The notes under the pieces are model-generated. The model saw nothing but the letters and a program-made list of their open reading frames with translations, was not told the DNA's origin and ran no database searches. From positions 62,001 through 126,000 of the IMG/VR virus record IMGVR_UViG_3300042549_005931: a stretch of DNA of 64,000 nucleotides, one strand, 5' to 3'. A program made the position numbers and the translations under genes. Shown one piece after another: positions 4,024-56,680 of this stretch (the first letter of the stretch is position 1; every line of letters starts with the position of its first letter).

Positions 4024-4058
4024 AACAATAAATACCTTAGAAAATAGAATTAGTAAAT

Positions 4059-4088: not shown

Positions 4089-4112
4089 AATTAATTACTA
4101 TTATACTTTAAA

Positions 4113-27629: not shown

Positions 27630-28244
27630 CTACTTCGTATTTTTTTCAGTTTCTTTTATCATATTTACATATCCTATCACACAACACGCAGCATCTGCCA
27701 TGTCGTAGTTCTCTTTCTTTAAAGCTCCTGTCTTTCCGTATAACCAATTAATGTCAGGACAAACCTCATTAACGTGTTCCCATATAACATGTTTTTTATC
27801 GATGTCTTTTGGGTATCCACCAAACAAAACATTACGACCTTTGTCATTTGGTCCAACTAAATCAGGAAAAGCGTATTTTCTTGAGTTGTATGTTGAAATA
27901 AATGTTGGTAAGATTCCTAATGCGTCATAACATACTTTAAGAATTAAAGTGTTGTAACGTAACAATGTACCAATTGTGTAAATGTTATTAGATTGAAGTA
28001 ATGGTTCTTCTATAATGACACGGGTGATACCCATTCCTTTATAATTTTCGATGTGTGTCTTAAACGCATCAGCCTTCTTAATTAATTCTTCGATTTTATC
28101 TTCGGGTTGTGGTTTAATTTTTGGGGAAAAGTGTGTTAACTCCAATAATTTTGACCCTGAGATATCAAATAACGCAAACCCAATTGTTTTGGTGCTGATA
28201 TCTAAACCAAGAATTTTAGCCGACTCAAGTATTTTTTTGCTCAT
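27630..28244 (-). CDS. ruvC: RuvC-like Holliday junction resolvase
   Basis: ILGLDIST..IG, VIIEEP, YDMADA: D/E/D/D catalytic set. Confidence 0.8.
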   Translation of the reverse strand: MSKKILESAKILGLDISTKTIGFALFDISGSKLLELTHFSPKIKPQPEDKIEELIKKADAFKTHIENYKGMGITRVIIEEPLLQSNNIYTIGTLLRYNTLILKVCYDALGILPTFISTYNSRKYAFPDLVGPNDKGRNVLFGGYPKDIDKKHVIWEHVNEVCPDINWLYGKTGALKKENYDMADAACCVIGYVNMIKETEKNTK

Positions 28245-30253: not shown

Positions 30254-32665
30254 TTAGCACTCTGAATTTAAATTAGAATCTCCACCATAATTTGGTCTTA
30301 GATATCTATATTTGGACCTGTTAAATTTGGTATTCTTTAATAACACACCACCTGACCATAGAGTAGTTGCCGGAACAAATTGTTCAATAACTTTAACCCA
30401 ATATGGTGACATCTTTTTTATGTATTCAGTTAATGTTGTATATTTAAATGGGGTTATATCAACACTGTTAATATAATCTCTATAAATTTCATCCAATATA
30501 GTATATCCTCTATCAAATTTCATTGAACTACTATTAGTTAATACGTTTTTCAATGTACTATCCAAATATTCTGCAAATGTAAAACCAGTCTGTGGTGTTA
30601 AAGTACCAAATGTTAATTCCAAATTAGATGATTGTCTCCAAATATCGTATTCAATTGTTTGTGATGGTGATAAATGTACATTAAGATTTTTTCTATTTAA
30701 TGTTAAGATATTTAAATCATTTACAACGCTTACTTTCTTATTGTCGATTCTTGACTTTAAATCATAACCATAATCCAAACCTTGGAATGTTCTAAAACCA
30801 TCAAAATAATCCTCACCATATGTATATGGTTTATTCATAGTTTTAGTGTATTTGGTTCTACCAGTCAATACAGAGTTTTCATAATCAACTACTAATGGTG
30901 ACCTATGGTCTAATGTGATATCATACCATCCTGAACCTTGTTGGAAGAATACACTACCATCACTACTTGTTGCACCTTTTGGTACACCGTTTTCATCAAT
31001 TGGGTAATCTGCTCTTGTTAATGTTGTGGTAGTTGTTGCTGTAATACTATTTGTAACACCGGTAACATAACTTGGGAATGTACCACCTGTTATTATATCT
31101 GTAACAATCACACCGGTTTCAACACCATTAATATAGTTGTATAAATCAAAATTAACTTTTAAATCGGTGATGTCACCAACATCCACTAACGTAGTAGCTT
31201 CACTTGGTACTGAGGTGATATCATAAACATATTCATCAATCTTAATCATTGGTTCAGGTGCACCTAAGAATTTCAAAAAGAATTCTAAAGCTTTACGTGT
31301 GCCTTTTGATTTATATAGTTGTGCAAGATTAATTAAAATTCTTCTGTAGAATTCATATTCAGATTCTATTAGATTCTTTCCAACCGGTACTCCTAAGTAA
31401 TTACTATCTTGTCTTGTATAAAGAATATCATTTAAACTCTTCTCATCGAAAAGATTAACGGTATCAAGACCCAAGTTTTGTGATAGATTTTTTAATAACA
31501 TATCAGGTACATTACTAATACCATCATAACTCACATGTCTCATGTAAGCAATGTTGTCGATATATTTTTTTACACTATCAAAACTTTGTCCGTATAATTG
31601 AAAAACCGATTCAGCTCTTTTATCTTCCGTATCGAATTCAAATAATTGCGGTGCGGTTAAAAATCTAACAATTAAATTAGATTTGTAGTCATCAATCTCA
31701 TCTGATAAGTCATAAAGCTTTTGAATATATTGGTCATACTCAATACCAACAATTTGTGGATTCCATCCGTCTCTCGACACCGGCCATGTTGCGTCAACAC
31801 CAATTAAATCGGTTGCACTTTCATCTAAACTATCTCTCGGTACACTAAATGTTGCAGTATAGATTGGATTCGACTCCCTATCAATCAATAATTCCTCAAG
31901 GTCATCTAAATTCTTAAAGAACTCTTCAATGATACTATCATTTGGTTTGATTAAAAAATCAACATTAACATCTGTACTGCCGCTAAATAAATTACCTTCA
32001 ACCTCGAATGTTATAATAAAGTTATTGTCAAAAGTTGGTTCAATGTAATTTGTAATATCGTAAGAAACACCACTATAAATTAATGTGTAATTTTTATATG
32101 ATGAATAAAAATTTCTAATTTCATTACTTGTTTCTACTAAAGTGTTACTATTTGGTTTTGTTAATACAATTTCAAATGGATTATAAAAAATTGATTGTTG
32201 TGTTTCAAATTGGGTTGTATTGGTTCCACTATCGTAACTAATATTTTCCGCCGTATAGTTTGTTGTTCTACTTACTGTTGTACTATCCGCCAATAACGAT
32301 GCGGGAAACTTACTAATAATTCTACCAATTGATATATTGATTCTATCTTTTAATGAACCAAATAAAGACCTACCAGCATCTTTTCTTGATGGTTTGAATT
32401 TAATTGTATCATTTGTTGTTTTTGATGTGTTGGTTTTTGGTGCGTTAGTTTCTTCCTTTAATGTATCTAAAGTCAAGAAATCGGAAAACGGTGTTGTTGA
32501 AAAACTTTTACTATCTTTTTCGGGTGTAAGTCTATCAAGTACAAAGTTGGTATTGGTCAATTGACTACTACCGTCAGTTATTTGATTACCAACTAAACTG
32601 TCGCTAAAAGTTTGTGCCCCACTGGCAGCTTGACTTGGAACTTTATATTTTACTACTTTTGCCAT
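30254..32665 (-). CDS. Baseplate wedge/tail protein (P2 gpI-like motif)
   Basis: LLKNLSQNLG...RRILINL..LYKSKGT.KALE; position in baseplate block. Confidence 0.6.
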   Translation of the reverse strand: MAKVVKYKVPSQAASGAQTFSDSLVGNQITDGSSQLTNTNFVLDRLTPEKDSKSFSTTPFSDFLTLDTLKEETNAPKTNTSKTTNDTIKFKPSRKDAGRSLFGSLKDRINISIGRIISKFPASLLADSTTVSRTTNYTAENISYDSGTNTTQFETQQSIFYNPFEIVLTKPNSNTLVETSNEIRNFYSSYKNYTLIYSGVSYDITNYIEPTFDNNFIITFEVEGNLFSGSTDVNVDFLIKPNDSIIEEFFKNLDDLEELLIDRESNPIYTATFSVPRDSLDESATDLIGVDATWPVSRDGWNPQIVGIEYDQYIQKLYDLSDEIDDYKSNLIVRFLTAPQLFEFDTEDKRAESVFQLYGQSFDSVKKYIDNIAYMRHVSYDGISNVPDMLLKNLSQNLGLDTVNLFDEKSLNDILYTRQDSNYLGVPVGKNLIESEYEFYRRILINLAQLYKSKGTRKALEFFLKFLGAPEPMIKIDEYVYDITSVPSEATTLVDVGDITDLKVNFDLYNYINGVETGVIVTDIITGGTFPSYVTGVTNSITATTTTTLTRADYPIDENGVPKGATSSDGSVFFQQGSGWYDITLDHRSPLVVDYENSVLTGRTKYTKTMNKPYTYGEDYFDGFRTFQGLDYGYDLKSRIDNKKVSVVNDLNILTLNRKNLNVHLSPSQTIEYDIWRQSSNLELTFGTLTPQTGFTFAEYLDSTLKNVLTNSSSMKFDRGYTILDEIYRDYINSVDITPFKYTTLTEYIKKMSPYWVKVIEQFVPATTLWSGGVLLKNTKFNRSKYRYLRPNYGGDSNLNSEC

Positions 32666-33588
32666 TATACGTTAGTAATGTTATCTAATCCTAATGTTTC
32701 ATCAATATCCGTTCTCTCTTCACGAACCTCATATAGTGTCTCACTAAATTCGTCTTTAATTTCGTAAAGGTTGTATTGTTTGTAAATTTCATTATTCTCA
32801 TCGTAGATTGTGTAGATACCCGGAGTAATCGCCTTAGTTTGATTACCGTACAATGCATGTGCCAATGTGCTAGCATCGTGTTCTACCATATCAATCTCAA
32901 TAGTTGTTGGATTAACAAACGTATTGGTTAATATAACCTTTTGACCCGGTTGTCCAATAAAAGGAATAACGTTTGGTCTTGTTGATGGTGATGACGAAGG
33001 TGTTATCGTCATGAATATTAAATTTGTTACTTGGTCAGTATATTGATATCTAATTGCCTTATCTGTTGTGTTAGATAAATTAGATGTTATTGGTTGACAA
33101 TAAAATGAAGATGTTACAACTCTATAGAAATTTGGTATTTTTGTTTTGTTATCGTTAGTGTTAATATATTCAACACGATAACCTACCATTCCTTGTGGTG
33201 TAAATTTGTTTCTATCTTCAGCCGGTACATTTGATGTGTCAATTATCAATCCTCTTACTGATGGAAGTGATGCTAAAACACCACAATCCGTAATTGTTGT
33301 TCTAATTTGTTTTGGTCTTATATGTAATGTATAGATTCCCAATTCAGAAAAATCGTCAGCACTTAATTTTAAATTATATAAACCACCTAATATCTCAGCA
33401 TTCGGTGCCGATGCGTCATCCGTAGTATCGGAATTGTGGTAAACAGGTGTCAAAACATCTGTTGATATTAATTTTTTTAGTGTAACCGGTGTTGTAGACG
33501 TTCTATTTGATGTATAATGATAATATATCTCAACATCTCCTGGGGATACGTCTGCGGGTCTTACTATACCATATGAGCCAACTGCCAT
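32665..33588 (-). CDS. Putative structural protein
   Basis: 307 aa; TATTTAT at 33602-33609; TAATG coupling. Confidence 0.6.
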   Translation of the reverse strand: MAVGSYGIVRPADVSPGDVEIYYHYTSNRTSTTPVTLKKLISTDVLTPVYHNSDTTDDASAPNAEILGGLYNLKLSADDFSELGIYTLHIRPKQIRTTITDCGVLASLPSVRGLIIDTSNVPAEDRNKFTPQGMVGYRVEYINTNDNKTKIPNFYRVVTSSFYCQPITSNLSNTTDKAIRYQYTDQVTNLIFMTITPSSSPSTRPNVIPFIGQPGQKVILTNTFVNPTTIEIDMVEHDASTLAHALYGNQTKAITPGIYTIYDENNEIYKQYNLYEIKDEFSETLYEVREERTDIDETLGLDNITNV

Positions 33589-33615
33589 TTCTTTTTTATT
33601 TAATAAATATAAATC

Positions 33616-34131
33616 TTATTGTTTTTTCACTTTAAAATAACCATTTCCATATACACTTAATTCTCCCATATTATCAATCTCACCCAATCTTAAGTTCATT
33701 TCCATTACACCCTGTTTTCCACGTTCAACAAAAACGTCAGAATAAATCTTTGGTTCATCAACAAATCCTAAAAAATGTTCATTACGAGATAACACCTCAA
33801 ATATTATTTCTTCTTTTGTAAAACCTACTGTGTTTCCTGTTAATACTGTATATCCCTCAGGATAATCAAGATAATAAACACCATCTATTGTATAACCGGT
33901 CGTGTTTGTTTCACTATCAATATTAATTGGGATTGTATATGTATCACTACCGTATTTTTTATATTCCGATAATTTACTTAATCCAATGGCATTATAATAT
34001 GTTATACCTGTGAAATTTGTATCACCGGTATATGCACTATAATCTAAATCATTTTGATAACCTTGTTCGTAACTCGTTTCCGGAGTTACATATGGTAATG
34101 TAAATGTTAGTGAACCTGAACCAAGTAGCAT
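33616..34131 (-). CDS. Putative structural protein, possibly the C-terminal half of a split gene
   Basis: 171 aa; preceded by one copy of the 23-bp repeat. Confidence 0.6.
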   Translation of the reverse strand: MLLGSGSLTFTLPYVTPETSYEQGYQNDLDYSAYTGDTNFTGITYYNAIGLSKLSEYKKYGSDTYTIPINIDSETNTTGYTIDGVYYLDYPEGYTVLTGNTVGFTKEEIIFEVLSRNEHFLGFVDEPKIYSDVFVERGKQGVMEMNLRLGEIDNMGELSVYGNGYFKVKKQ

Positions 34132-34150
34132 AATTAATAATGTATTCTAG

Positions 34151-34173
34151 TAAATATCTTTAGAATACTTTTG
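34151..34173. repeat. Direct repeat, copy 1 (TAAATATCTTTAGAATacTTTTG)
   Basis: 21/23 identical to 47899-47921. Confidence 0.8.
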
Positions 34174-34210
34174 GATTAATATAATGAATAAATTGGTGTA
34201 AATAAATCTT

Positions 34211-34798
34211 TTAAATTGTATCGCACTGAATAAATTCAAGCATTACCTTTTTATTAATAGTGGGTGATGCTGTGGTAATGTTAAAGGTAAAATTGTATTC
34301 ACCCTTACCCAATATTATTTTACCACTATCTGAAGTTGTTGTTGATACAGTAATACTTGATGGGGTTGGGTATGGTGTGTCATCAATATGTGTCACTGTT
34401 AGTGTACTTGATACGTTAACACTATCAAGGTCATCATTTGTTACTGTTAATTTTAGAACCGGAATACCATTTGCACCAATTAAATTCGAAACGTAACTTG
34501 TAAAACAAAAATCGGTAGATTGGAATGTAATAAAAGAATCGCCACATTTTATTTGATAAAATGTATAACCGTTAACCAATTGTTGATGTGTTAAATCTGA
34601 TTTTAAAATTGTATATTCAGGTCCAATATTTAAAACATCGACTATACCTGAACTTGTTCCACCTGTAATTTCAACACTACTAACACTAATCCCGCTCATT
34701 GTAATTCCTGAAGATTCATAATGTTCCAAAGTAGCAACAAATGGACCAATAATCTGATGTGGTATATTTTTATATTTTACTTTTACATTAACCGCCAT
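34211..34798 (-). CDS. Hypothetical beta-rich protein
   Basis: 195 aa; TATTTATA at 34803-34810. Confidence 0.65.
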   Translation of the reverse strand: MAVNVKVKYKNIPHQIIGPFVATLEHYESSGITMSGISVSSVEITGGTSSGIVDVLNIGPEYTILKSDLTHQQLVNGYTFYQIKCGDSFITFQSTDFCFTSYVSNLIGANGIPVLKLTVTNDDLDSVNVSSTLTVTHIDDTPYPTPSSITVSTTTSDSGKIILGKGEYNFTFNITTASPTINKKVMLEFIQCDTI

Positions 34799-34810
34799 AT
34801 CTTATAAATA

Positions 34811-37800
34811 TTACACCGTTATTATATATGCAGTTGTTTCTGTACAACCATTATTATCGGTAACTTTAACATAATAATAACCTGCCGTAACACTACTAAA
34901 TGTTACATTTGATGTATCAGTTAATGTGTCAACTACACTACCTCCACCAACTTCGTATGGTGCTGAGAAATCTTGATACAATTCAAATGTTTTACCACCT
35001 GAAGCACCACCTGAAACGGATGCATAAATTTGGTCAAATGCAGTTTTTTGTGCAAATATTCCAAGTGCACTTGGTTGTGTTATTGTACGAGAATATTCTT
35101 CAACTTTACCCGCACTATCTTTAATATAAACAGTGTACGTACCTGCAGGTACATTATATGTTGTTGATGAGGTCCAATTTGTATATGTGGTATAAACACT
35201 ACTTAATTTAGTTTGGAAAGTTCCGCCACTTCCACCTGTTACGTTAGTGATAGTTATCGTACCGTCATTTCCATTACACGCCGCATTTGCACTTGATACT
35301 GTTGCGGTTATACAAATTGATTCATATAATGTTACGGTTTTGTCAGTATAAACACTAGTATTACAATTAGGACTTGCATTGTAAACCCTTACAGTGTATA
35401 CTTGACTACCGCCTAAACCGTTTATATATCCAGTATCAATTGTTGCATTTCCACTACCATTTATAGTTCCATCAGGTGATGTACAACCATTATTTGTACA
35501 TGAGAATGTTGCACCATTACAATATCTATAAAAGTCACCAGGGTTTCCACCTGTAATTAAAAGTTTACCAGTCGTACTTGTACCATTCGTAACACAATTT
35601 GGTTGTGTTGTACCCAAATTAAATATTGGGTATGATAAGATTGTTATATCGGTTGTTGTTGCGGCAGCACTTCCGCCAGTACCATTTAATACCACATAGA
35701 ATGATTCACTACCTTCAGATAATCCGTCAGATGAAATTGTTAATGTAAATGTACCCGTATTACTATTAATTGTAACATTTCCACTTGTTGCACTTGAGAA
35801 ATCGGCAGATGATGTTGTTCCATTATAACCAACATACCAACCAAGTGACGTTCCATTTCCAATATCTGTTGTATTAACTGTCAATGTTATAGTATCACCC
35901 TCAGCAACAGTATATGCCGATGATGTGATGCCATATGTTGGTTCCGCAACATTATTAACACTAATTGTAAATTGTTTTTCTGTGTATAGTCCACCTTGGT
36001 CAGTTGAACGAACTCTAATTGAGTATGACGATTTGGTTTCATAATCAAAAACAACTGAATTTCTAAGTGAGCTTCCTGAAATATTAAAGCTACTATTATC
36101 TCCACTACCTGTTCCCGCAACTAATGTATATGTAAATGAGTTACCTGAATCGGGGTCAATTGTTTGGAAGGTACCAATTGATGTGTTTATTGATGTGTTT
36201 TCATTTTGTGAACTATTACTTAATATAATATCTGTCGGTGTTTCATTAACATTATTTACATATATCGTAAAATCTTTCTCGTAATATAAACCACCTCCGT
36301 CTGTTGAACGAATTCTAATTGAGTAAGATGATTTTGATTCATAGTTAAATGTTCCGTTAGTGAATAAATCATCTCCCGTAATTGCAAAACTACCATTATC
36401 CACACCACCTGATGCAAATGAATATGTAAATATATTAGTACCATCAGGGTCAGTTGTTGAGAACGTTCCAACAAATGTTGTTGAACTTGAATTTTCATTA
36501 ACATATACATTAGTTAAACTAATATCTGTTGGCGATTCATTTACATTATTAACACCAATTGTAAATTGTTTTTCGTTATATAAACCTCCTTGGTCTGTTG
36601 AGCGAACTCTAATCATATACGCGGTTTTAGACTCGTAGTTAAAAACTATAGAATTTCTAAGAGCGTTTCCTGAAATATTGAAACTACTATTATCATCACT
36701 ACCTGTTCCCGCAACTAACGTATAAGTGAATGTGTTACCCACATCAGGGTCACTTGTTGAGAAAGTACCAATTGTAGTATTAATCGATGTATTTTCATTT
36801 TGTGAGGTATTACTTAAATTAATATCTGATGGTGTTTCATTAACATTATTAACAAATATTGTAAATTGAGCTTCTACATATAATCCACCTTGGTCTGTTG
36901 AGCGAACTCTAATTGTATATGATGATTTAGTTTCATAATCCAAAAATACAGTATTTCTTAGTGAGCTTCCTGAAATATCAAAACTACCATTATCTCCACT
37001 ACCAGTTCCTGTCACTAATGTATAAGTAAATGTGTTACTTGCATCAGGGTCAGTTGTTGAGAAGGTTCCAATTGTTGTATATTGTGCTGAACCTTCATTA
37101 ATATTGTTAGTACTTAACGATATTGACGCTGGTGTTTCGTTCACATTACTAATGGTTATAGTGAATATTTTTTCAAAAAATTGTCCAAGTGAATTGGTTG
37201 AGCGAACTCTAATTGAGTACGATGACTTAGCCTCAAAATTATAAACTTCAGAACTTCTTAACTGTGTTCCTGATATGTTAAAACTACCATTATCACCACT
37301 ACCCGTTCCTGTAACTAATGTATATGTATACGTCTCAGTAATTGGACTTGCGGTTTGTGATGAGAATGTTCCAATAACATAATTTATTGAACTATTTTCA
37401 GGTATTGATTCACTCGATAATGAAATACCATTTGGTGGGTATGGTGACGGTGTCGGTGTTTGTGTTGGTGTTCTTGTTGGCGTAACAGTATTTGTTGGCG
37501 TTTGTGTTCTCGTTGGCGTAACAGTATTTGTAGGCGTAACAGTATTTGTAGGTGTAACAGTGTTTGTTGGTGTTTGTGTTGGTGTTCTCGTTGGTGTAAC
37601 AGTATTTGTTGGTGTTTGTGTTGGTGTTCTCGTTGGTGTAAAAGTATTTGTTGGTGTTTGTGTTGTTGTTGGTGTAAACGTATTTGTAGGTGTAACAGTG
37701 TTTGTTGGTGTTTGTGTTGGTGTTCTTGTTGGCGTAACAGTATTTGTTGGTGTTTGTGTTGTTGTTGGTGTAAACGTATTTGTAGGTGTAACAGTGTTTG

Positions 37801-40800
37801 TTGGTGTGGTCGATGGCGTGAAAGTAGGTGTTGGTGTAACAGTATTTGTTGGTGTTTGTGTTCTCGTTGGTGTTACAGTTGGGGTAACCGTATTTGTTGG
37901 TGTTACAGTACTTGTTTGGGTTGGAGTTGGGGTTGGTGTAGGTGTTACACACGGTGCGGTTGATGTAACTTGAGAGTTACCACTAACATCGGTAATAGTT
38001 AATACATTACCACTACCGTCACTTTTTCTAATAAAAAACGTGGAAACTCCTGTAGTACCTAAAGTTGTATTTAATTCAGCAATAGTCCAAGCATCGGTAC
38101 CATCTGGTGACTGATATAAAAATTCATTTAATTCCAATGGTTGGTCAGCGTCATAAATTAAAATTTGTGTACTCGGTGAATAACAAACCGTATATGAATC
38201 TGTTGAAATATAGTAATATGCCCCATCAAGTGGATTAGACGTTGATGGTGTTATAGTAGGTGTAACGGTACTTGTAGGTGTAGGTGTTTGTGTTCTTGTT
38301 GGCGTAACAGTATTTGTTGGTGTCACCGTATTTGTTGGTGTTTGTGTTCTCGTTGGTGTAACAGTGTTTGTTGGTGTAGTTGATGGTGTAAAAGTAGGTG
38401 TTGGTGTAACAGTTGGGGTCGTAGTTGTAGTTGGTGTTGGTGTTGGAGTACGCGTAGGTGCGACATAACAACCACCAAGTGATAATATTGAAATTTGTGC
38501 AATGTTATTTTGGTCTTCAACTCTAGTTGACCCCTTTAACGTACCATAAAATACCCCCGTATTAATTGTATATATACCCTGAGATACTTCTTCATATATC
38601 GTTGTATATGTTTCATCAAAATATTCAATAAATCCACCTGAATTAACAATATACGTGATACCGGTATATGCATCACAAATTGTTGGTGGAACACATTCAC
38701 TATATGTACCTATATTAAATGTAACCCTATTAAATGGATTTGGGCTATTAAATGATGTAATTGTTACATTTGATATATCATTAAAATTCAAATCGGGTAA
38801 TGGTATAAATTTTTCACTTTCATCACTTAAAAAATTAACCGTTACCGTGGAATATAATACACTACTACCCGTATATATATTTGCATTAAAATTAACTCCA
38901 ACATATGAAACTGTTTGTCCGCTTTGCGAATCCTTTATTATAAATTTAACACCATTATCACTTAAATCACTACAAATTTCTTCTGAATCAATAACTAAAA
39001 TACTTGATTGAAAATAACTAAAAATTGTACTATCGAATGGATAAATTTCACGGTATAAACTATCGGCAGCTTCGGTGTAATCGTATGTTGATAGGTTATC
39101 ATCATACAAATAAAATGTTTCTTGGGTTGATAAATTATTTATAAATCCTCTAACAACGAGTGGGTCACTATAGAACGATGATTCATTCCAATTATTAATT
39201 ATATTGATGTTGGTATTACCGTCAAATATTAAATTATCTCGATTATTCGATGTTGCAAACCAAGCACTTGTATAATTTAAGTTTGTGTTTGAAACACTGT
39301 ACGTTCCGGTAGTTCCGGAAACTGAAGAATCCCCACTATTTACCCATAATAAAATATCCGTAACTATACCATTTGTTAATTCATAAATTTTTCTATAATA
39401 TGTTTCATCGATAACCGAATAATATCCATTTAACACACTATAAAATCCATCTCTTTCATAATATAATTTTTTACCAATTGTAACACCTTGTGTATCTGAA
39501 TTATCATAAAATAATGTATAAATATTTTGTATATTTTCTACTTTTATTTCATGTGTGAAATATGTGATAATACTGGTTACACCTGGTTTTGATTTAAATG
39601 GTAATTCTCCCGTTGTTCCAGTTAAAGATATTAAATAATTATTTGCTTGACTGTCAGCATCTTCAATTGAAATTGTTGATTCTATTAATCCACGAGGAAC
39701 AACAATTTTTTTAGGTATAAAGACATTTAAATCTCCAATTTTTTTAGTGGTAGTTGTTAATTCAAATGTTATTTCATTATTAGTATATCCACTAGCAGAT
39801 TTTTCAGGAACACCCATAGTATAACAAAGTAATATTTCACTATTATACTGTGTATCATAAAAAACCGGTGATGAATCGGGAACTGTTGATATTTTAAATA
39901 AATCTAAACTATATTCACGTACTGTATTTAAAGCATATGATACCTCTCTGGACGTTATGACTCCTGTATTTGAAATTGTATAAAAATAATCTCCGTCACA
40001 TAATGTGGTATAATAATTTTCATATGGAGTAGAACTATGTTCATTACCTGTAGTAAAATCGGCGTGTTTATAAATTGTTATTCCAGGTTTTAAATATGGC
40101 GTTGTTGTATATCGTCTTCTTAATACTTTAGAATCTTCAAACACATCTTTATTTGTTCCAAAAATACTATACAAAAATCCTAATAAAGCACCAACAATTG
40201 GTATTGAATTTAAAAAGCTAAAAATACCGAGTGCTAGAAATGCATCAGCTATATTGTCATATGTTGTTTTTGACTTAAATCCCTCACTATCACCCCCATA
40301 AAGAAAATATGACGCAATTGCTTTAACAACAGCATGTCTACTCCCCGGTATTGGAATATGTTTTTCCTCATTATAATTGTAAATTGTAAAAGCATTATTA
40401 CTGGCTAAATGTGGTGTTGAATTTGACACACCAAGAAAATATGAATAAACTATTGGTTGTGTTAAAGTACTTGGGGTAATAGTTTTAGTTATCGTTGCAT
40501 TAAATTCCGGAAGTTTAAAATCTATCGCACTCCAAAATGCCCTATCATATGAAGGTGTAATTGTTAAATCGGTGGTAAAAACATTTGTTTGTGGTATGAA
40601 TGTAAAATCTTTAGGCCCGTTATATATTGGTGTTGCTTTTAGAGGTTTAAGGAACTCATTTTTAAAATTATAATCAACTTTTGTTCCGTAAGTTCTTTTT
40701 ATGTCACCCAATCCAAGTTTATAAATGAGATTTGTATTATATATTGCGCCATAATAATATGGTAGGCATCCCCATTCAAAAAATGGGTCATTAAATACAA

Positions 40801-42145
40801 CACAATTTGACGTAAAGGTAAAGGAGGTTGGCCAATTCTCTATCAACACAGGTGTGTATACTCGTGTGATTACTTTTGGGTTATAGTATGAATCGTATGG
40901 TGAATATGGGTGAAGTCCAAGTCTATAATTATAAATTTCGGTACCACAAGGAGCATCAATTTCATAGGGTGTATTTGGGGGGTCAGCACAATCATCCCTT
41001 GTATTTATTGGATATTCAGTTGCCACTCTAAGATGAACCATTCCGGTTATGGTTACTATACTAACAGTTTCATTCGCTTCAAATAGTGTATCAAACCTTA
41101 CTTTATTAAAATCACAACCACCACCAACACTAAGTTGTCCAGGTTCATCTAAATTTAGACCATCACCAACTGTAAAAAAAACTCGACGAGTTCTTTGCGG
41201 AGTTGTTGGAATTTTATTTACACTTATTTGAACTAATCTATGATTTGTTGGATAATGAAAAATATAATCGACAATTTGATATTTGTATCCATTTGTTTTA
41301 ACGTTAGTGGCATTTCGATAATATGGATGTGGAACCATTTTACAAGGTATTCCACCACCACTAAAAGATTCATCCCTACATTGGTTTGAAAATCTATATT
41401 CGGTACTACATGTATAAGCCACCATGGTGTGTGATACATTATTATATACATAATAAAAAATGATAGGTGTGGCAACACTAGCCCTCAACTTTGAGTTATC
41501 GTAATGTGTTTTAGGTACAAAAGTGTCACCGTTAGATACTTCATTAGCCAATAAATCATCATAATACCACCTACTATTTATGTAACTGTTATTTGAAGAA
41601 CTATCTGTTTTTTCTTTATATAATGTGACAACTTGAGGACATGTTGTACATACATAATCATTATTAGTATATCCACTACAAAATTCTTCAAAGTATATCG
41701 GAGGGTCACAATCAAATTTTATTTTAAAACTTCCTGAAGTACCACCCGTGGTCTTAAAATCTATGGTAAAATAAATGTCATTTGTGTTATCGACATCTAC
41801 TGAAAAATGAAAGTACTTATTAACTGCAGTTGGTAAAGTATTAATGTCAATTGTTGAAATTACCAAATCTTTACCATTAACTAATTGTTTTATGTAAATA
41901 ATGGTATTTGCTCCACCCATACTTATGGGTGTCATTGTTAATCTAATTAATTTGCGTAAAGAAGGTGGGGTTGTTGATACGTCTTTTTTTAAATCTTTTA
42001 ATTCATTGTATTTTAAAAAAAAAGTGGTGCCTGACACATGTAATCCTTGAGTGCTCCATGTTAAAGTTTTTTCAACACCACATTCATTTGCTATGGGTGT
42101 TGAACTATCAATAGGTACCGGACAATTAAAATTAAATTCACTCAT
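34811..42145 (-). CDS. Giant adhesin-like protein: Thr/Pro stalks, five cadherin-like repeats, Calx-beta-like and SprB-like modules
   Basis: Five units of EN...IGTFS..DPD...FTY.LV...DN.SF.I.G..L......YE.KSSY.IRVRSTD.GG...EK.FTI.VNNVNE.P; VAEGD...[10 protein letters not shown]; CNGNDGTI...GG...YTVYIKD. Confidence 0.8.
37445..37950 (-). repeat. Thr/Pro coding repeat ([12 protein letters not shown])
   Basis: Degenerate 18-bp units gttggtgtaacagtattt; a second block lies at about 38240-38460. Confidence 0.9.
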
Positions 42146-42157
42146 TCATTTTATATT

Positions 42158-42451
42158 TTATGATATTTTAAGACCATATATTGTACCCATTTTATTTGGT
42201 ACATGTATTATTTTTGTACTTTCAATAATTGTATTTGTATCTTGAGATTTATTATATGTTTTTTTAAATAAAGTTAATTTACTTATATAATTAAATATCT
42301 CAATATTAATATCTCTTGAGTTATTTGGTGTTATATAAAAGTTTATATCATATATTGAATTATTATCGTCAACGTTAAACCAAACTATTTTATTAATCTG
42401 ACCAAAGTTCACACTAAAAGATACATCAGGAATGTTAGTATATGTACTCAT
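42158..42451 (-). CDS. Hypothetical protein
   Basis: 97 aa, very AT-rich, between the two giant genes. Confidence 0.55.
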   Translation of the reverse strand: MSTYTNIPDVSFSVNFGQINKIVWFNVDDNNSIYDINFYITPNNSRDINIEIFNYISKLTLFKKTYNKSQDTNTIIESTKIIHVPNKMGTIYGLKIS

Positions 42452-42464
42452 TTTATTTTTTTAT

Positions 42465-45400
42465 TTAAAGTAATTCATCATATATTATTCTAATATCATC
42501 TCCACTTGAGGTTGCACTACCAAATATACCCGGTGTTAAGAAATTTTCGTATGCACTAATACCTCTCTTTCTTTCAATACCATTACAATCAATCCAGAAT
42601 ATATTTCCACCCGTATAAGACGCGTTAAACGATATCATAACACAATCTCCAATTTGACCCGCATAATTGGTACATGTAGTACCACTACTTGTGATTGTAA
42701 ATGTTGCTTGATTGTCAAGAATTGAAGGTGATTTCAACGATTCAACTATAATACATTCAGAAATTGTGTATGTACCAAGAGGTGCAAAGAATGATTTTTG
42801 TCCATTTTCAGTATTATAGATAATGTAACCATCATCAATTATGTTTAATGTAACATTCTCTCTAAACGTTTCGGTACCACCTGTCACAACCTCATTACAA
42901 ATTAATGTAGTTGCACATGATGTTGTTGTTTTAATATCAAATGGTTGGAAAGTTGTAGTATTTTTTGAATAAACCACAATATCTAAAACTTTCGAATCGT
43001 CAGTTCCAATAAATCCAACTGTTTTTGTTATATTATTACTTCCATTATATAAAACAAAAATTTCACCAACTTTCTCAGCGTAATTACCAACAAACACTTC
43101 TGTTGTTGAATTATATGTTATTGCACTAATTGTTACCTCATAATTACCATAAGAATTGTCTAATATGAACGTATTATTAAGTATGGTCGTACCCGCATTT
43201 AATACAGTATTAGTCACATTACCTTCATTACATGCCGCAGTTCTTAATGTATTACCTGAACAATCACCTACTAATTCAACTAATCTTGAAGTTATATTTT
43301 GATAATGTGAACCACCGCTATAAAGTACATCAAAATATGGTTCCGTTAATGAACAGTTATCATAACAAATATCACTTGGATACGTACCCGCAACTTGATA
43401 ATCAATAGATGCTATGGTTGTAGTTCCACATGGGTAATAATATAACGTAACTTTTTTATCATCACTTACATCAATATCATTTTGAGTAATTATAACATCA
43501 TAGCTAGTACATCCCGTACATTCTCTTGGTGTGGTTGTTAATGTAGGTGTAGGTGTGTTTGTAGGTGTAATCGATGGTGTGAAAGAAGGCGTAACAGTAT
43601 TTGTGGGTGTAATCGATGGTGTAAAAGTAGGTGTTGCCGTTACGGTTACTGTTTGTGTTAAAGTAACTGTTGGTGTAACAGTATTTGTTGCAGTAACACT
43701 CGGTGTGATACTGTTAGTTGGTGTAATGGTATTAGTTGGTGTAATAGTATTAGTTGGTGTAATAGTATTGGTTGGTGTAATAGTATTGGTTGGTGTAATA
43801 GTATTGGTTGGTGTAACTGTTGGCGTTTCAGTAACAGTTGGTGTGTTTGTGTTAGTTGGTGTAACGGTACTTGTAGGTGTAACAGTTGGTGTCTCAGTAA
43901 CACTTGGTGTAACGGTATTTGTAGGTGTAACAGTGTTTGTTGGTGTTTGCGTTTGTGTTTCAGTAACACTTGGTGTGATTGTGTTAGTTGGTGTGATTGA
44001 TGGGGTAACCGTAGGTGTTTCAGTATTTGTAGGTGTTGGTGTATGAGTTAAATCAGTTGTTGACGTAATTGATGGTGTTGGTGTCGTTGTTGGTGTAACA
44101 GTTTCGGTAGCTGTTGGTGTAACAGTATTCGTTGGTGTAACAGTTGGTGTAACAGTATTTGTCGCCGTAACAGTTGATGTAACAGTATTTGTTGGTGTAA
44201 CAGTTTCGGTAATAGTTGGGGTTACTGTATTCGTTGGTGTAACTGTTGGGGTTTCAGTAACTGTAGAAGTAACTGTATTTGTTGGTGTAATTGTTGGCGT
44301 TTCAGTAACAGTTGGGGTAATACTATTTGTTGGTGTAATTGTTGGCGTTTCAGTAACACTTGGAGTAATTGTGTTTGTCGGCGTAACTGTTATCGTTTCG
44401 GTAACAGTTGGAGTAACAGTATTTGTTGGTGTAATTGTTGGCGTTTCAGTAATAGTTGAGGTAACAGTATTTGTTGGTGTAACTGTTGGAGTTTCAGTAA
44501 CACTTGGGGTAACTGTATTTGTTGGTGTGGTGGTGTTGGTAGTAGTTGGGGTAACAGTATTTGTCGGTGTAATTGTTGGGGTTTCAGTAACTGTAGAAGT
44601 AACGGTATTTGTTGGTGTTACAGTTTCGGTAACTGTATTTGTTGGTGTAATTGAAGGTGTAGACGTAGTTGTTGGTGTAACAGTTTCGGTAACTGTTGGA
44701 GTAACACTATTTGTTGGTGTAATTGTTGGCGTTTCAGTAACTGTTGATGTGGGTGTTGGAGATAAACCAGTGGTTGCACTAACACTTGGAGTAATACTAT
44801 TTGTTGGTGTAATTGTTGGCGTTTCAGTAACAGTTGGTGTAATACTATTTGTTGGTGTAACAGTTTCGGTAACTGTTGGAGTAACACTATTTGTTGGTGT
44901 AATAGTATTGGTTGGTGTAACTGTAGGTGTTTCAGTTACCGATGGGGTAATACTATTTGTTGGCGTTATCGTAGGTGTCTCAGTAATAGTTGGTGTAACG
45001 CTCGATGTTACAGTGTTGGTTGGTGTGGGTGTATGTGTTAAATCAGGTGTTAAAGTAACTGTTGCAGTAACGGTGTTTGTAGGTGTTACAGTTGGGGTTT
45101 CAGAATTTGTCGGTGTGATACTTGGTGTAACTGTTGTAGTTTCGGTATTTGTAGGTGTTGTCGTCATTGTTGACGTAACAGTTTCAGTAACACTTGGTGT
45201 AACTGTATTCGTTGGGGTTAAGGTAGGTGTTTCTGTATTTGTTGGAGTTACACTTGGTGTGATTGTGTTTGTAGGTGTTACGGTTTCAGTAACAGTTGGG
45301 GTAATAGTATTTGTCGGTGTAACTGTTGGTGTTTCAGTATTTGTAGGTGTTGGTGTAACGGTATTACTTGGTGTAACACTTGATGTGACAGTATTTGTAG

Positions 45401-47888
45401 GTGTTGGTGTATGAGTTAAATCAGGTGTTAATGTAACACTTGGTGTAATCGTATTAGTTGGTGTAACACTTGATGTAATCGTATTAGTTGGTGTAACACT
45501 TGATGTTACAGTGTTAGTAGGTGTGATACTTAAAGTAGGTGTTATTGATGGTGTTACAGTATTTGTAGGTGTAGCAGTTGGCGTCTCAGTAACGGTTGGT
45601 GTTTGAGTAACTGTTTGTGTTGGTGTTTCAGTTATTGATGTTGTAATGGTTGGCGTAACACTATTTGTTGGAGTTACACTTGGTGTAATACTGTTTGTTG
45701 GGGTTACACTTGGCGTAACACTATTTGTTGGTGTTTGAGACGGTACAAAATTCTCTGTTAGAGTTGGCGTGTTTGTTGGTGTAACACTATTTGTTGGAGT
45801 AGTGGTTGTGGTTGGTGTAATCGTCTTAGTAGGTGTTACCGTTGGTGTTGGTGTTTTAGTTAAATTAGGTGTCAATGTAACACTTGGTGTAACCGTTTTT
45901 GTTGGTGTGGCGGTTTGTGTTGGAGTTTTAGTTAAATTAGGTGTTAATGTAACACTCGGTGTAACTGTTCTTGTTGGAGTTACCGTGTTGGTTGGTGTTA
46001 CAGTTGGTGTAGTTGTTTTTGTCGCAGTAACACTAGGTGTAACTGTTCTTGTTGGTGTAGCACTTGGAACAATTGTTCTCGTTGGTGTAACACTCGGTGT
46101 AACTGTTTTTGTTGGTGTAATTGACTTAGTAATCGATGGTGTTACGGTATTTGTTGGTGTTAAAGTTACTGTTGGTGTGATAGTACTTGTTGGAGTCACC
46201 GTTGGTGTTGGTGTTGGCGTTTTGGTTAAATAATTTGGACATTGAACATTAAAATTCCATAATGTTTCAGGGTCAGTGCTAGCATTTACAACAACTTTTA
46301 CGGTATTTTCAACAGAGGTTGAACCTGTTATTAAAATGTTACTAATACCTGAACCGGTATATGTTCCAATTAAATTATTTATTGGGTAATAAACACTAAA
46401 TGAATCATTAATAGTATATGAGTTGTATTCAAATATAGATTCACCAGAATAAACATTACAATTTATAAAATATGTTTGTCCCGTACCCGGCCCACCATAA
46501 ACAGGAGCGTCACATAGATAATCTCTTGTTGGTGTAACAGATGGTGTTGCAGTTTTAGTAGGTGTAACAGATGGTGTCACAGTTTTAGTTGGTGTTACTG
46601 TTGGAGTTGTTGTTTGTGTTGTCGTTGGTGTTGGTGAATTTGTAGGTGTTGGAGTTGGTGTAAATGGAATAATACATTCAACCATAAACGACCATAATGT
46701 TTCAACTTCACCACTATCCACCGGATTAACAACAACTTTCACTACATCCGATGTACCATCAAGAGATAATGTATATGTCGATACACCCGATAATGATGTG
46801 AATCCTGTTAAATATGTGTTTATAGGGTAGTAAATGTCAACAGAATCAGATATCGTAAAACCACTGAAACTAAATACTGATGTACCAGGACTATTACCAA
46901 CATTGATATAATTCTCTAATGGCATTGGTGAATATCCACCCGAGTAAATAGTGTTACATTCTGTACCTTCAACGATTGGTATGATTTCAACATCGATTTC
47001 AAACGCACAAAGTATGGTTGGCGTCATTGTTGGTGTTGGTGTTAATGTTGGTTCCATGGTCACCGTAGGTGATACCGTCGGGGTTACACTTAATGTTGGG
47101 GTTGGTGTAAGTCTTATAGTTTTTGTTGGGGTTGGTGTTACCGTATTTGTTGGAGTTACTGTTGCAGTTATAGATGGGGTAACTGTATTTGTAGGTGTTA
47201 CGGTATTTGTTGGTGTTGGAGTTTGTGTTACAAACGTTTCACAATCAATCATCATCTCTTTAGACAACGAATTGTTAGTCCAAGGTGAATCTAATTTAAT
47301 TGTTACGTGTTTTGTTCCAACCGTATCATATGATTTATATGCTTTGTAACAATTAACACCACTACAAACACCTTCAACACCAATAGGGGATGTTGTTCCA
47401 TCACCCCAATCTACTGTAAATATAATTTCACCAACACCAGCAATATTTTTTAAATTAGTTGTGTTAGTTACCGTTACATTATTACAATCAACTTCGTAAA
47501 TAAAGTTCGCATTTATTTGATTTTGTGTTGATTCAACACCAACACTACCATCAAATGCCAACATGACACCATATTCATCGGCCGTAGATTCTAAAAATAA
47601 AGGTATTTGTTGTGTGTCGTATATTTGAGAATTAATTTCTGAGGGTGTTCCACTTATTAAATTCCAAGTACCGCTTGTTGGTTCTCCCCATCTGTAGTAA
47701 CCACTATCTTCTGTTCCACCTGAAACATTAAAAACAACTAAACCCACACTAACTTGACTGTCAGTTAAACCGGACCAATCAATGGTGGATGTGTAAGTAT
47801 CGTCAGCATACCATGTTTGACCGGTCAAAGAAACCAATCTAACATTCGCAATGTTTTTACGTCTAAGGGTATACTTATTTTTCTTCAT
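42465..47888 (-). CDS. Giant mucin-like protein: PKD-like N-terminal region, Cys-bracketed beta modules, ~900-aa Thr/Pro stalk
   Basis: FTVDWGDGT; duplicated C...DS...YYPIN...VKVVVN....ETLW.F.V.C module; long (T-x)n tract. Confidence 0.8.
43530..46230 (-). repeat. ~2.7-kb Thr/Pro low-complexity coding repeat
   Basis: Continuous [12 protein letters not shown]-type units, G+T-rich on the + strand. Confidence 0.95.
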
Positions 47889-47898
47889 CTATATAATT

Positions 47899-47921
47899 TA
47901 AATATCTTTAGAATGGTTTTG
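47899..47921. repeat. Direct repeat, copy 2 (TAAATATCTTTAGAATggTTTTG)
   Basis: 21/23 identical to 34151-34173. Confidence 0.8.
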
Positions 47922-47932
47922 TAGTGGACATA

Positions 47933-49126
47933 TTAAAAACATCCAACATCAAAACATCCACTTAGTGTACCCGAAATTACACCCGCACCAACAGGTAGAT
48001 ATACATTACCAGGACTTAAGAAAGTTGGGCCACCGTAAATTCCATTATCACCCGTTATAGTTACACAAAATTCACCTTGACTAACACCGTAAGAGTCGTA
48101 AAAAATAACTCTAACAACATCACCATTTGTATGCCCTAATAATGTACCATATGAATAAAATGATTGTACATTTATTGAGCTACTATCGCTACATTTAGTT
48201 GCAGTATATGAATAGTGTGTTGGATTTATGGGTGGTGTGGCTGACGGTGTTGGTGTTGGTGATGGGCCAGCTGATGATGCCGATGGGCTTGGTGGTGTAG
48301 ATTGTTGAGTTAAAAACTGTTTTTCATAAAATTTAATCGCATTATTCATACCTTTTCCAACTAAATTATCTTCAGTTGTCGTTTCACCCGAATATTGGTA
48401 GACTTTATAAGAATAATTTGTTTTATCTATATTGATTTTATAGTACATATCTCTTTCTTCAACAAGTTGTTGGTCAACAGTTAATTCGGTTGTTGTAAAA
48501 TCTAATATTGAACCGTCTAACGCGTTCATAAACTTTGCGGTCATGAAAAATGTATTACCACTCAATGTTGAATCACTTAAAACAGTATCATCTTGAAACC
48601 AAAATAGATACATATTTTCTTTGTTTTTATAATTCGAACCCATAAACACCGGAATATGGATATTTTGTCTAAGGGTATTATAATAAAATTTTTCCCCTAA
48701 TGGTAGTGATAAATTTTTTGAAAAAACCAATTTTCTATTTACCCTTGTAGGTGGTTCATTATTTGGTGTTTTGAAAAATTCTAATCTAAAAAAACTTTCA
48801 GAAGAAACTTTGGTCATTAATGCGTTGTCTTTTGGTGAAATACCAACCAAACTATAATCTAACCCATTAGTATATGTACCATTTGAATCAGTAAAATAAA
48901 ATTTATACCAAATATCACATTGGATATCATCACTATTACCAGTTAAACCAGAATATGATTCATGAATAAATCTTACAGTTTCGTAATTGTCAATTGGGTT
49001 TATAATTGTAGATAAAATCTCCTCTTCAAATATATCCATACCTTCTTCCCAACCTAAATTTGTTTGGAAGTCATTTTCTTGGTTAACAATTATGTTGTAA
49101 TCACCGGTTTTTCTTAAAATTTTCAT
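47933..49126 (-). CDS. Putative structural protein with Pro/Ser/Thr linker and appended Cys-containing module
   Basis: 397 aa; SFFRLEFFKTP core; TPPSPSASSAGPSPTPTPSATPP linker. Confidence 0.6.
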   Translation of the reverse strand: MKILRKTGDYNIIVNQENDFQTNLGWEEGMDIFEEEILSTIINPIDNYETVRFIHESYSGLTGNSDDIQCDIWYKFYFTDSNGTYTNGLDYSLVGISPKDNALMTKVSSESFFRLEFFKTPNNEPPTRVNRKLVFSKNLSLPLGEKFYYNTLRQNIHIPVFMGSNYKNKENMYLFWFQDDTVLSDSTLSGNTFFMTAKFMNALDGSILDFTTTELTVDQQLVEERDMYYKINIDKTNYSYKVYQYSGETTTEDNLVGKGMNNAIKFYEKQFLTQQSTPPSPSASSAGPSPTPTPSATPPINPTHYSYTATKCSDSSSINVQSFYSYGTLLGHTNGDVVRVIFYDSYGVSQGEFCVTITGDNGIYGGPTFLSPGNVYLPVGAGVISGTLSGCFDVGCF

Positions 49127-54847: not shown

Positions 54848-56680
54848 TTAATATGTAGTCGTTCCTAAAGTTTTAGTACGTACTTTTATGTCCACATTAG
54901 GGAATCTAATTTGAAAAATTTGATTAGATTTCATATTAATGGTCATATCAAATTGTTGAATTTCTTTTGTGGACGCAACTTTATATGTTTGAGAAACTTC
55001 AGAGAGTGAGTAATCTCCACCCGTTTTACCAAACACACGAATATCTACAATGTTTACAACACCGGTAACATTACCAATTTCTCTCATTAAATCACCAACA
55101 AATAATGGGTCACCCATCTTACGTTTTTCAATTGCAAAAAATTCAATAACATTTTGAATTGTGGTTTTAACAATATCTGTTGTGGTTGAATTTTTATCAG
55201 TAATCAAATCAATTTCTAATCCTAAGTCTATAACCTCACCACTTTGAATATCAATATAGTCATTAATCATTCTATACTCTGAAAGGTAGTTGATGATATT
55301 TTCTTTTAATGTATTTGATACCACGTCAGTTAAATTACCATTATCATCATATGATAATAATTTCACTCTAACTTTATTATCTTCTTCCATCACATTGACT
55401 TTAGCAGGTGCACCAAATGTTCCCGGCATAGATTCAATTAATGATTTGTAGTCATTTAATGTTACCGCTCTATTTTGTGCTGAGAAATTATAAGCAATCA
55501 TGTTTCTCAATTCTTCAATTGTTGGTTGGTCAGCACCACCAACTGCCGGTGTTACGTTACTTACACGTAATGATTGTTCTACTTGTAAATTAATTGTTGA
55601 TAATGGACCGGTGATATTGAATTCAACATTTTCCACATTTGTAATAACATCAACACCTAAATTAGAATCTTTTCCACCACCAATACGGTATCTTACAAAC
55701 AATGTAGTGTTTGCCTTAGGTATGGTTCCCAATGACATATTATTTAAATACGTTCCTAAATTAACTTTCATTGAACCATTCATGTAATCGTCAAGATTAT
55801 CCAATGGGTCAACAGTTCCCGAACCAAATGTTAATGAAAAGTAACTCTCAGGTGTAAATTCTGTGATAAATTTATTTTTTACCGGAACATATGTTCCTGC
55901 TTTAAAATTATCTTTATCTGAAGCCGTTGTTGGGTCAGGTAAAAATATCGTATCTTCAATTAAACTTTTAACCTCATACCATTTATTGGATGTTGATTCA
56001 AATTCTGAACTTGTTGGGTTAGCACCGAAGCTAGTTCCTTCTTTATGAATTACTGAAGTTACACCTAATATATTTTGTTCAGGTAAATAAATCTTTAAGA
56101 ATGGTTTTTGGTCTAAAGTTGTAATTACTCTTCTGTAAATTCTTGTAACACCGTTTACTACCGCATCTCTTTTTGTAATTGTATATGATATCAATGTATT
56201 ATTACTATCAAAATTTGGTATCTTTAATCTATTTGGTTCACCTTTACTATTAAAAGGATTAGAAAAATCAATATCTTCTAATGTTTCAAATATTTGACCT
56301 GCACCCGATACTTGAGCACCCGACTTTAAAATACCAAGATATCTTTCATCTTCTTTATCACCACGAACCGGTACATTTATTGAGAAATCACATAATGCAA
56401 CTGATGGTCTATTACCCGGTATCTTAATACCATATGTTTTTGCAATGTGAAATAACGATTGTCTTTGTTGTGCAAAATCCAACATAGTTTCTTGCCAAAC
56501 TCTATCAATATGAAAATGTAAGTTATCAGCAACGGCAGCATTTAAATCCAATAACACGGAGAATATTGATGCATCATTAGTATTTTTTACTAAGTCAGGA
56601 TAATATTCTTTTGTTAAGTTTACTAATTCTTGTCTTAATCCCGCAAAGTCTCTTGTTGCGTATGAAATCTTTTTTGCCAT
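54848..56680 (-). CDS. Baseplate wedge subunit (T4 gp6/P2 gpJ-like)
   Basis: RDFAGLRQEL, FGSG, YRIGGG..SN, GGAD..TIEELR, QNRAVT.NDY. Confidence 0.85.
   Translation of the reverse strand: MAKKISYATRDFAGLRQELVNLTKEYYPDLVKNTNDASIFSVLLDLNAAVADNLHFHIDRVWQETMLDFAQQRQSLFHIAKTYGIKIPGNRPSVALCDFSINVPVRGDKEDERYLGILKSGAQVSGAGQIFETLEDIDFSNPFNSKGEPNRLKIPNFDSNNTLISYTITKRDAVVNGVTRIYRRVITTLDQKPFLKIYLPEQNILGVTSVIHKEGTSFGANPTSSEFESTSNKWYEVKSLIEDTIFLPDPTTASDKDNFKAGTYVPVKNKFITEFTPESYFSLTFGSGTVDPLDNLDDYMNGSMKVNLGTYLNNMSLGTIPKANTTLFVRYRIGGGKDSNLGVDVITNVENVEFNITGPLSTINLQVEQSLRVSNVTPAVGGADQPTIEELRNMIAYNFSAQNRAVTLNDYKSLIESMPGTFGAPAKVNVMEEDNKVRVKLLSYDDNGNLTDVVSNTLKENIINYLSEYRMINDYIDIQSGEVIDLGLEIDLITDKNSTTTDIVKTTIQNVIEFFAIEKRKMGDPLFVGDLMREIGNVTGVVNIVDIRVFGKTGGDYSLSEVSQTYKVASTKEIQQFDMTINMKSNQIFQIRFPNVDIKVRTKTLGTTTY

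Follow-up and report, generated by a model that had tools for sequence, protein, structure and literature searches.

In modular phage tail fibres, a conserved N-terminal anchor carries an exchangeable distal part, as in T7-like gp17 and in the Klebsiella and CBA120-type anchor/branch systems. Phage particles also bear Ig-like, PKD and cadherin-type domains for decoration and adhesion, including T4 Hoc and the Ig-like domains of tail proteins. In the ‘genes in pieces’ of T4-related phages, exemplified by Aeromonas phage Aeh1, the nrdA gene is split by the mobE homing endonuclease gene (PMC3045599; reviewed in PMC2988022). Here we analyse a locus that has parallels with these systems. It occupies positions 33,616–47,921 of a 64,000-nucleotide stretch of DNA (the window, to which coordinates refer unless stated otherwise), which corresponds to bases 62001–126000 of the linear, 269,133-bp IMG/VR virus record IMGVR_UViG_3300042549_005931 (32% G+C). 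The locus contains open reading frames (ORFs) for proteins of 1807, 97, 2444, 195 and 171 amino acids (aa), and two copies of a 23-nt sequence, the 23-mer. We propose that one gene of the baseplate module was split in one clade by a hypervariable adhesin block, and that the 23-mer copy next to its N-terminal half (the N-copy) was added recently, a reading to which we assign a probability of roughly 75%.

Comparison with the known systems brings out what is distinctive here. As in modular tail fibres, a conserved N-terminal module of ~220 aa is followed by variable distal sequence, within a baseplate/fibre module. Unlike in those fibres, an older two-part protein has supplied its front half as the anchor, the back half persists as a conserved gene on the far side of the block, and the block itself comprises up to four ORFs and up to 13.7 kb. 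The resemblance to phages with Ig-like decoration lies in a PKD-like domain in the N-terminal half (N-half) and in tandem cadherin-type repeats in the 2444-aa protein. In contrast to small capsid or tail decorations, however, the proteins here are giant and multi-domain, with mucin-like Pro/Thr stalks of ~1,100 aa. As in Aeh1, a conserved phage gene has been split by inserted DNA and both separately translated halves have been retained. By contrast with Aeh1, no endonuclease lies between the halves and the insert consists of structural, adhesin-like genes; moreover, the N-half appears to have gained a new role in a giant protein. There are also broader implications. First, the locus offers a clean, datable example of a phage structural gene that was taken apart and rebuilt. 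Second, it could be of practical use as a marker of how host range evolves in uncultured jumbo phages.

Two halves of one baseplate-module gene

The N-half (residues 1–217 of the 1807-aa protein; 47238–47888, – strand) and the 171-aa protein (the C-half; 33616–34131, – strand) are two halves of one 310–400-aa protein. All window proteins were mapped onto IMG/VR loci (numbered with the prefix L) and the ORFs of these loci were listed; 32 loci contained a relative of the 171-aa protein and 6 were retrieved with residues 1–220 of the 1807-aa protein. Single ORFs that span both parts, with nothing between them, occur in four arrangements (398 aa in L028/L029, 310 aa in L006, 325 aa in L019/L020 and 369 aa in L040/L041), in all of which the ORF is flanked by homologues of the 397-aa (47933–49126, – strand) and 307-aa (32665–33588, – strand) genes of the window. 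The same neighbours are found in L006, L019, L028, L040, L042 and every split locus, and the 307-aa gene, which comes after the C-half or single ORF in every relative, provides an anchor for synteny. A first-pass annotation, made from the letters of this DNA alone, had proposed that an ancestral gene encoding an N-terminal ~220 aa plus the 171 aa was split around an adhesin-like block, in which case relatives without the block should encode single proteins of ~400–450 aa that cover both parts. Such single proteins exist, at 310–398 aa and at the same genomic position.

Two further lines of evidence bear out this proposal. First, the junction is exact. In our alignment A1, split N-halves end just past the last strand of the PKD-like domain, and separate C-half ORFs start at the next conserved positions of the single-ORF proteins, with no loss at the junction. 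Second, the halves are complementary. A family profile built from alignment A2 of single-ORF proteins and searched against all six frames of the genome gave only two matches, covering positions 1–221 for the 1807-aa ORF (E = 2.7e-60) and 210–373 for the 171-aa ORF (E = 2.9e-72); no intact fused paralogue was detected in this six-frame search. The two matching regions lie 13.1 kb apart in the window, with three ORFs between them. The earlier description of the 171-aa protein as a fragment is apt in that it is half of a gene, but the ORF is intact and has not decayed. A separate C-half ORF of 168–210 aa is present in 28 related loci, and its last ~65 residues are the best conserved part of the family.

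The family extends well beyond these loci. A word-based search with the L028 protein returned at least 940 relatives, the best 120 of which are all single ORFs that span both halves, either of 370–440 aa or, without the first subdomain, of roughly 290–350 aa. An exhaustive profile search of 1.84 billion cluster representatives gave 1294 matches at E ≤ 0.001. The best 150 of these include 54 single-ORF proteins (27 of them distant, with E values of 1e-27 to 1e-42), 23 with the C-half only, 13 with an N-half and a long extension, 27 short N-only proteins, possibly contig fragments, and 26 unrelated giant PKD-repeat proteins. The locus family is abundant in lakes, with hundreds of variants. A large single-ORF subgroup lacks the first ~75-aa subdomain (about residues 11–85 of the N-half; for example, L006 9551–10483 and L019 9548–10525) and distant relatives have a different N-terminus of 45–70 aa, whereas all split forms keep the first subdomain.

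From N- to C-terminus, the ancestral protein comprises a small beta domain, a PKD-like domain, a linker, another beta domain and the highly conserved stretch of ~65 aa; the N-half retains the first two of these domains. An AlphaFold2 model of the L028 homologue, based on 103 sequences, reached a predicted local distance difference test score (pLDDT) of 66.7, with residues 1–88, 110–205 and 255–330 confident; a first model from a shallow alignment had a pLDDT of 54. Residues 110–205 (pLDDT 80–87) matched 6aem_A in Foldseek (E = 1.9e-4, TMt 0.73) and, by VIA, 4l9d_A (Z 9.8, root-mean-square deviation 2.7, 81 aligned). Through this homologue, the PKD-like domain named in the first-pass annotation is supported at the level of fold; no Pfam PKD model was listed for the N-half or the L028 protein even at E values up to 5. 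Searches of PDB sequences with the family profile and three neighbours gave no meaningful match, whether to the solved T4 baseplate periphery proteins gp9, gp10, gp11 and gp12 or to others, and a look-up in the ESM Atlas returned no named relatives. A predicted complex of the N-half and C-half scored 0.00, but controls were not run and the result is evidence neither way on binding. In every split relative the N-half forms the N-terminus of the first variable giant protein, a position that fits an anchor role. In our reading, the N-half would anchor a mucin-like fibre and the C-half would be a separate part of the baseplate.

Direction of the split and variation between the halves

In a tree of two flanking proteins (307 aa and 803 aa), single-ORF and split loci are divided by one bipartition with 100% support. 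Because this tree is unrooted, it gives no direction by itself and would also accommodate an ancestral two-gene state from which single ORFs arose by loss of the interior and fusion. The distant single-ORF loci L040–L042, which keep the gene order, are an outgroup on the two flanking proteins (ingroup support 100; identity of the 307-aa protein 55–61% versus 73–81%). When rooted with them in a quick tree search, the flank tree leaves the near single-ORF clade sister to or among the split clades with weak support (83), which is again what an ancestral two-gene state could produce. Several observations speak against that alternative. In a gene tree of the PKD-like domain plus C-half (298 columns and 80 rows, with split halves joined for alignment only), split forms make up one clade (99% support) nested several levels deep inside single-ORF lineages; the distant clade splits off at 99, and another level is supported at 96. 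Single-ORF forms are also far more numerous and more divergent, and the most distant syntenic relatives have single ORFs. Finally, precise in-frame fusion without loss of a residue is less likely than insertion into a linker, and in-frame insertions into linkers are seen elsewhere in this family. We regard an ancestral two-gene state as improbable. The simplest reading of the trees is that the split is derived and that one fission event took place in the ancestor of the split clade.

Some single-ORF members of the family carry in-frame insertions at linkers and resemble intermediate forms. In P0138, a single ORF of 522 aa, a Fib_succ_major domain (E = 6e-23) is inserted in frame exactly at the split junction, and in P0241 (1134 aa), P0229 and P0246 the insertions precede the last ~60 residues. 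The insertion in P0241, a distant relative (L042 3129–6533), comprises ~730 aa of Cys-rich repeated modules in frame before the last ~60 conserved residues, and the gene that comes next encodes more than 2700 aa. The smallest split form, L031, has a 687-aa N-half ORF and a C-half ORF in the same frame (L031 5990–6030), separated by just two stop codons (TAA TAA) and five sense codons. This arrangement fits an in-frame insertion that later gained stops, although a shared frame would arise by chance in one case in three.

The DNA between the halves is highly variable. In split relatives it ranges from 1.5 kb, as an extension of one ORF, to the 13.7 kb found here, and contains one to four ORFs. 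The closest relative, the contig of L001/L033, with 91% identity on flanking proteins, has block ORFs of 1455, 1850 and 196 aa, compared with 1807, 97, 2444 and 195 aa in the window. The 97-aa ORF (42158–42451, – strand) is missing from the block of this closest relative and had no relatives or families in our searches, and the 195-aa ORF (34211–34798, – strand) has only nearest relatives and no family.

We propose the following sequence of events. The ancestral protein would have been a peripheral part of the baseplate, and the linker after its PKD-like domain would have become, in one clade, an entry point for foreign coding DNA, after which the gene fell into two. The N-half could then have served as the N-terminus of a giant protein, with a mucin-like Pro/Thr stalk and a distal globular binding part, and would attach this fibre to the virion. 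Meanwhile, the C-half would have become a small gene of its own, with a promoter-type element upstream, and kept the original structural role, and the 2444-aa cadherin-repeat protein could be another fibre or adhesin in this module. The conserved halves could function as homology arms, allowing the block to be exchanged between phages by recombination. Finally, this species would have gained the N-copy together with ~375 nt that lengthen the upstream gene, giving both halves the same upstream element.

A more far-reaching version of this model is that the linker is a dedicated landing site for multi-gene, hypervariable adhesin blocks, in which the N-half acts as a universal socket for giant mucin-like fibres that can be interchanged, the C-half remains a structural part that stands alone, and the two halves plus the conserved element before the C-half act as recombination arms through which phages swap whole blocks. 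We consider this extension tentative, with the odds somewhat against it. If it were true, the locus would represent a host-range diversification locus of a kind undescribed for tailed phages.

History of the two 23-mer copies

The 23-mer pattern has exactly two matches, where 0.04 are expected from shuffled sequence, confirming the two-site direct repeat of the first-pass annotation. The N-copy (47899–47921, – strand) lies 10 nt upstream of the 1807-aa ORF and is confined to this phage species. The other copy (the C-copy; 34151–34173, – strand) lies 19 nt upstream of the 171-aa ORF, inside a conserved intergenic region of ~80 nt. In the sense of the genes the pattern reads CAAAA-nn-ATTCTAAAGATATTTA, and the two copies are identical at 21 of 23 positions. 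The prospect that the 23-mer, with its variant ‘late’ box, would prove common at other promoters is not realised, as its 16-nt core has only these two sites in the 269,133-bp genome and no other within one mismatch.

An assembly chimera, joined at the repeat or within the Pro/Thr repeats, is one explanation to consider, as the record is metagenome-assembled and the Pro/Thr repeats draw many unrelated contigs. We examined metagenome reads as assembled Logan contigs, which cannot show rare variants. Independent contigs from other studies bridge the N-copy junction at 47.9 kb and both of its neighbours with few differences: X4 spans the whole 3 kb around the N-copy with 21 differences, and X5 spans 47478–48921 with 11. 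The same gene order also recurs in many independent IMG/VR contigs. The bridging contigs indicate that the arrangement is not an artefact, for which we see a negligible chance, and that it is fixed in this phage species.

The two copies have different histories. Before the C-half ORF, most split relatives have this ~80-nt intergenic region in conserved form, with (T)CTAAAGATATTTAC-TAG at its end; L001, L002, L035 and L037 carry the complete 23-mer without a change. Before the N-half ORF, the 23-mer is present in no relative, including the closest one; close relatives have an unrelated 12-nt spacer between the stop codon of a 270–275-aa upstream gene and the N-half ORF, and a subgroup that is more distant carries a TTATTTATA box of its own at this position. 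In the window, this upstream gene encodes 397 aa, and the 125 residues that are extra relative to close relatives (residues 273–397; 47933–48310) form a Pro/Ser linker and a small Cys-containing domain. The extension (~375 nt), its stop codon and the N-copy together make up a single stretch of ~420 nt, which this lineage has newly acquired; IMG/VR yielded no relatives of the extension, and no source was found for the ~420-nt stretch. By its distribution, the C-copy is old, ancestral to most of the split clade. The N-copy is the recent one, as it is absent from all relatives while an identical C-copy was already in the lineage, and it was most likely copied from the C-copy. This order is the opposite of that in the first-pass annotation, where the promoter was duplicated to keep the C-half expressed; it is the C-half that has the old copy and the N-half the new one. 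Within the window, a palindrome with 8-nt arms surrounds the C-copy, but a conserved structure there was dropped as a candidate after RNAalifold gave no consensus structure across relatives.

Direct repeats lying 13.7 kb apart around giant genes could also be the ends of a mobile or excisable cassette, either att-like sites or a target-site duplication, between which recombination switches the adhesin block off. Four observations make this very unlikely. First, one repeat is upstream of the N-half, and excision would delete half of a conserved gene. Second, relatives carry equivalent blocks without the N-copy. Third, no integrase, transposase or endonuclease family was found among the five ORFs of the block. 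Fourth, no deletion joint at the 23-mer was seen in the Logan contigs of four runs, although contigs can miss rare variants. Recombination between the repeats had been suggested as a way to delete the block, but the N-half would be lost along with it, leaving the ancestral gene unrestored. Nor do the repeats bracket the insertion, as first thought: the true homology boundaries are near 47237 and 34132, and the N-copy sits upstream of the N-half. The 23-mer is not the scar of that insertion, and is most likely a copied promoter-type element. More generally, a direct repeat that conspicuously flanks a block is not necessarily its boundary.

Part of the similarity between the copies is shared with other upstream regions of the genome. 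T4-type late promoters have a single –10-like box, TATAAATA, that is read by a phage sigma factor. The present genome resembles T4 in that many genes, including structural ones, are preceded at a distance of a few to ~40 nt by one short A+T-rich box, and in having its own sigma-family genes. It differs in that the box is TATTTAT rather than TATAAATA, and the 23-mer runs far beyond the box. With 314 ORFs called crudely across the genome and 7-mers counted in the 45 nt upstream of each, we found TATTTAT enriched 16-fold (59 of the 314 ORFs), ATATTTA 14-fold (39 ORFs) and ATTTATA 10-fold (47 ORFs), whereas the T4-type box precedes just 9 genes and is not enriched in this way. TATTTAT or ATATTTA occurs within 45–60 nt upstream of about 40–60 genes, several of them in this structural module (for example, at 28228–28240, 33600–33615 and 34800–34810); the TATTTA-type box that the first-pass annotation saw in both 23-mers is this enriched box. 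Sites with the box have no conserved position upstream of it, and a longer form, (C)TAA(A/G)G(A)TATTTA, occurs at ~8 other upstream regions. One of these is the weaker match noticed earlier near 4029, which is present as CTAAGGTATTTAT. A terminator-like G+C-rich hairpin with a T run (4060–4100, – strand) lies just upstream of the box at 4029, and a small unlisted ORF starting near 4022 comes after both.

These sites raise the question of whether the copies are alike by convergence on an extended promoter consensus and not by copying. Between 7 and 12 of the 23 nt are attributable to a promoter-type consensus, whereas the CAAAA-nn-ATTC part is not. Upstream of the shared consensus are 11 nt, of which 9 agree between the copies in a combination unseen at other box sites. 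As noted above, the 16-nt core is unique to the two sites, and in close relatives the sequence at the N-half position is unrelated, yet the C-copy is identical. The extended consensus, which had been raised as an alternative at the outset, therefore accounts for ~12 nt that recur at other upstream regions but not for the other 11. We consider convergence unlikely as the full explanation, although it keeps an appreciable share of our belief. Two sigma-70-family genes, at 18206–19015 (– strand), whose product has regions 2 and 4, and at genome position C1:166415–166600 (+ strand), encode candidates to read the TATTTAT box. Both 23-mer copies may act as promoters and could co-regulate the two halves.

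Returning to our proposal of a split baseplate-module gene with a recently added N-copy, several findings weigh against it. The AlphaFold2 confidence is moderate (66.7) and is low for the conserved C-terminal residues 333–398. Low confidence is often seen for segments that fold only within an assembly. Fold searches were dominated by PKD/FN3 matches, residues 110–205 alone resemble known folds, and no Pfam, PHROG or PDB match was found for the protein family. In L030/L031, the gene is split yet the conserved element before the C-half is absent. The rooting of the trees depends on few outgroup loci, and the placement of the near single-ORF clade at support 83 means that a second event may have occurred, or that part of the clade may later have undergone re-fusion or allele replacement. 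Because ~12 of the 23 nt fit the extended consensus of roughly 8 other upstream regions, that part of the identity between the copies is not evidence of copying. Finally, among the runs that hold this DNA, none is an RNA run.

Block proteins, neighbouring genes and the phage

The 1807-aa protein changes character after ~217 ordinary residues. The remainder of its gene (42465–47237, – strand) encodes Pro/Thr-rich, mucin-like stretches that total ~1,100 aa, two globular inserts of ~100 aa (residues 292–406 and 455–550) and a Cys-rich C-terminal part of ~330 aa; no Pfam family was found downstream of the N-half. The earlier description of an ordinary N-terminus that switches to repeats captures the transition, but the inserts and the Cys-rich end show that the remainder is not made of repeats alone. 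The 2444-aa protein (34811–42145, – strand) combines a large N-terminal body with Pro/Thr linkers and roughly five cadherin-type repeats in tandem. It matches Cadherin (PF00028) in four stretches (E = 6.3e-28; 97.5 bits versus a cut-off of 28.8), and the tandem period in its gene is 300 nt with 4.6 copies. Its C-terminal ~165 aa reappear in many split relatives, where they close the last large ORF. At the C-terminal end of the 2444-aa protein (34814–34900), there is a sub-threshold match to Por_Secre_tail, a type IX secretion sorting domain (E = 0.013; 16 bits versus a cut-off of 27). Together with the Fib_succ_major insert of P0138, this match hints at gene flow from surface proteins of Bacteroidota, although the Por_Secre_tail match alone is not significant. 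Searches of Pfam and PHROGs returned nothing for either half, the 97-aa and 195-aa ORFs or most neighbours.

The source of this DNA is an uncultured lake-water jumbo myovirus-type phage, and CheckV estimates the record to be 81% complete. Near-identical DNA turns up in metagenome runs from 14 studies of lake water and other fresh waters. Nearly all window genes are on the – strand. A baseplate wedge gene of the gp6/Baseplate_J type (54848–56680, – strand) lies three genes upstream of the split locus, placing it in a baseplate/fibre module, and just past the wedge gene are genes for a class I ribonucleotide reductase and a DnaB-type helicase. By the wedge protein, the nearest cultured phages, a Flavobacterium phage (27% identity) and a Microcystis phage (25%), are very distant; matches of this gp6-like protein in INPHARED have 25–29% identity over near-full length, with three further hits weaker and partial. 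DNA and protein searches of INPHARED with the neighbours and both halves gave no match, and the annotated region of the Flavobacterium phage was uninformative for the locus. When membership of the ‘moraphages’ (PMC12619734) was checked, no lysyl-tRNA ligase-type match was found in the 81%-complete record, and sigma-family genes were present. On weak hints, the hosts may be Bacteroidota.

Variation in this module is not confined to the split gene. Among relatives, the upstream gene at 47933–49126 has a conserved front of ~270 aa and a variable C-terminal extension; its product is 266–298 aa in some, 397 aa here, and 424, 495 or 1111 aa elsewhere, with long versions at L003 1526–2800, L007 1461–2948 and L010 643–3978. 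A constant front with a variable tail amounts to an anchor-plus-variable-tail pattern in a second gene of the module. An extra 1.2–2.5 kb is also present between homologues of the 803-aa and 647-aa genes (L002 13775–16298, L003 13810–15341 and L004 7548–8752), and this interval may be a second variable spot of the module. Finally, in L006, a 309-aa ORF (10502–11431) with resolvase-type HTH_7 repeats (E = 2.3e-9) lies between the single-ORF gene and the conserved 306-aa gene, and, at the edge of the variable locus, may be a gene of mobile-element type.

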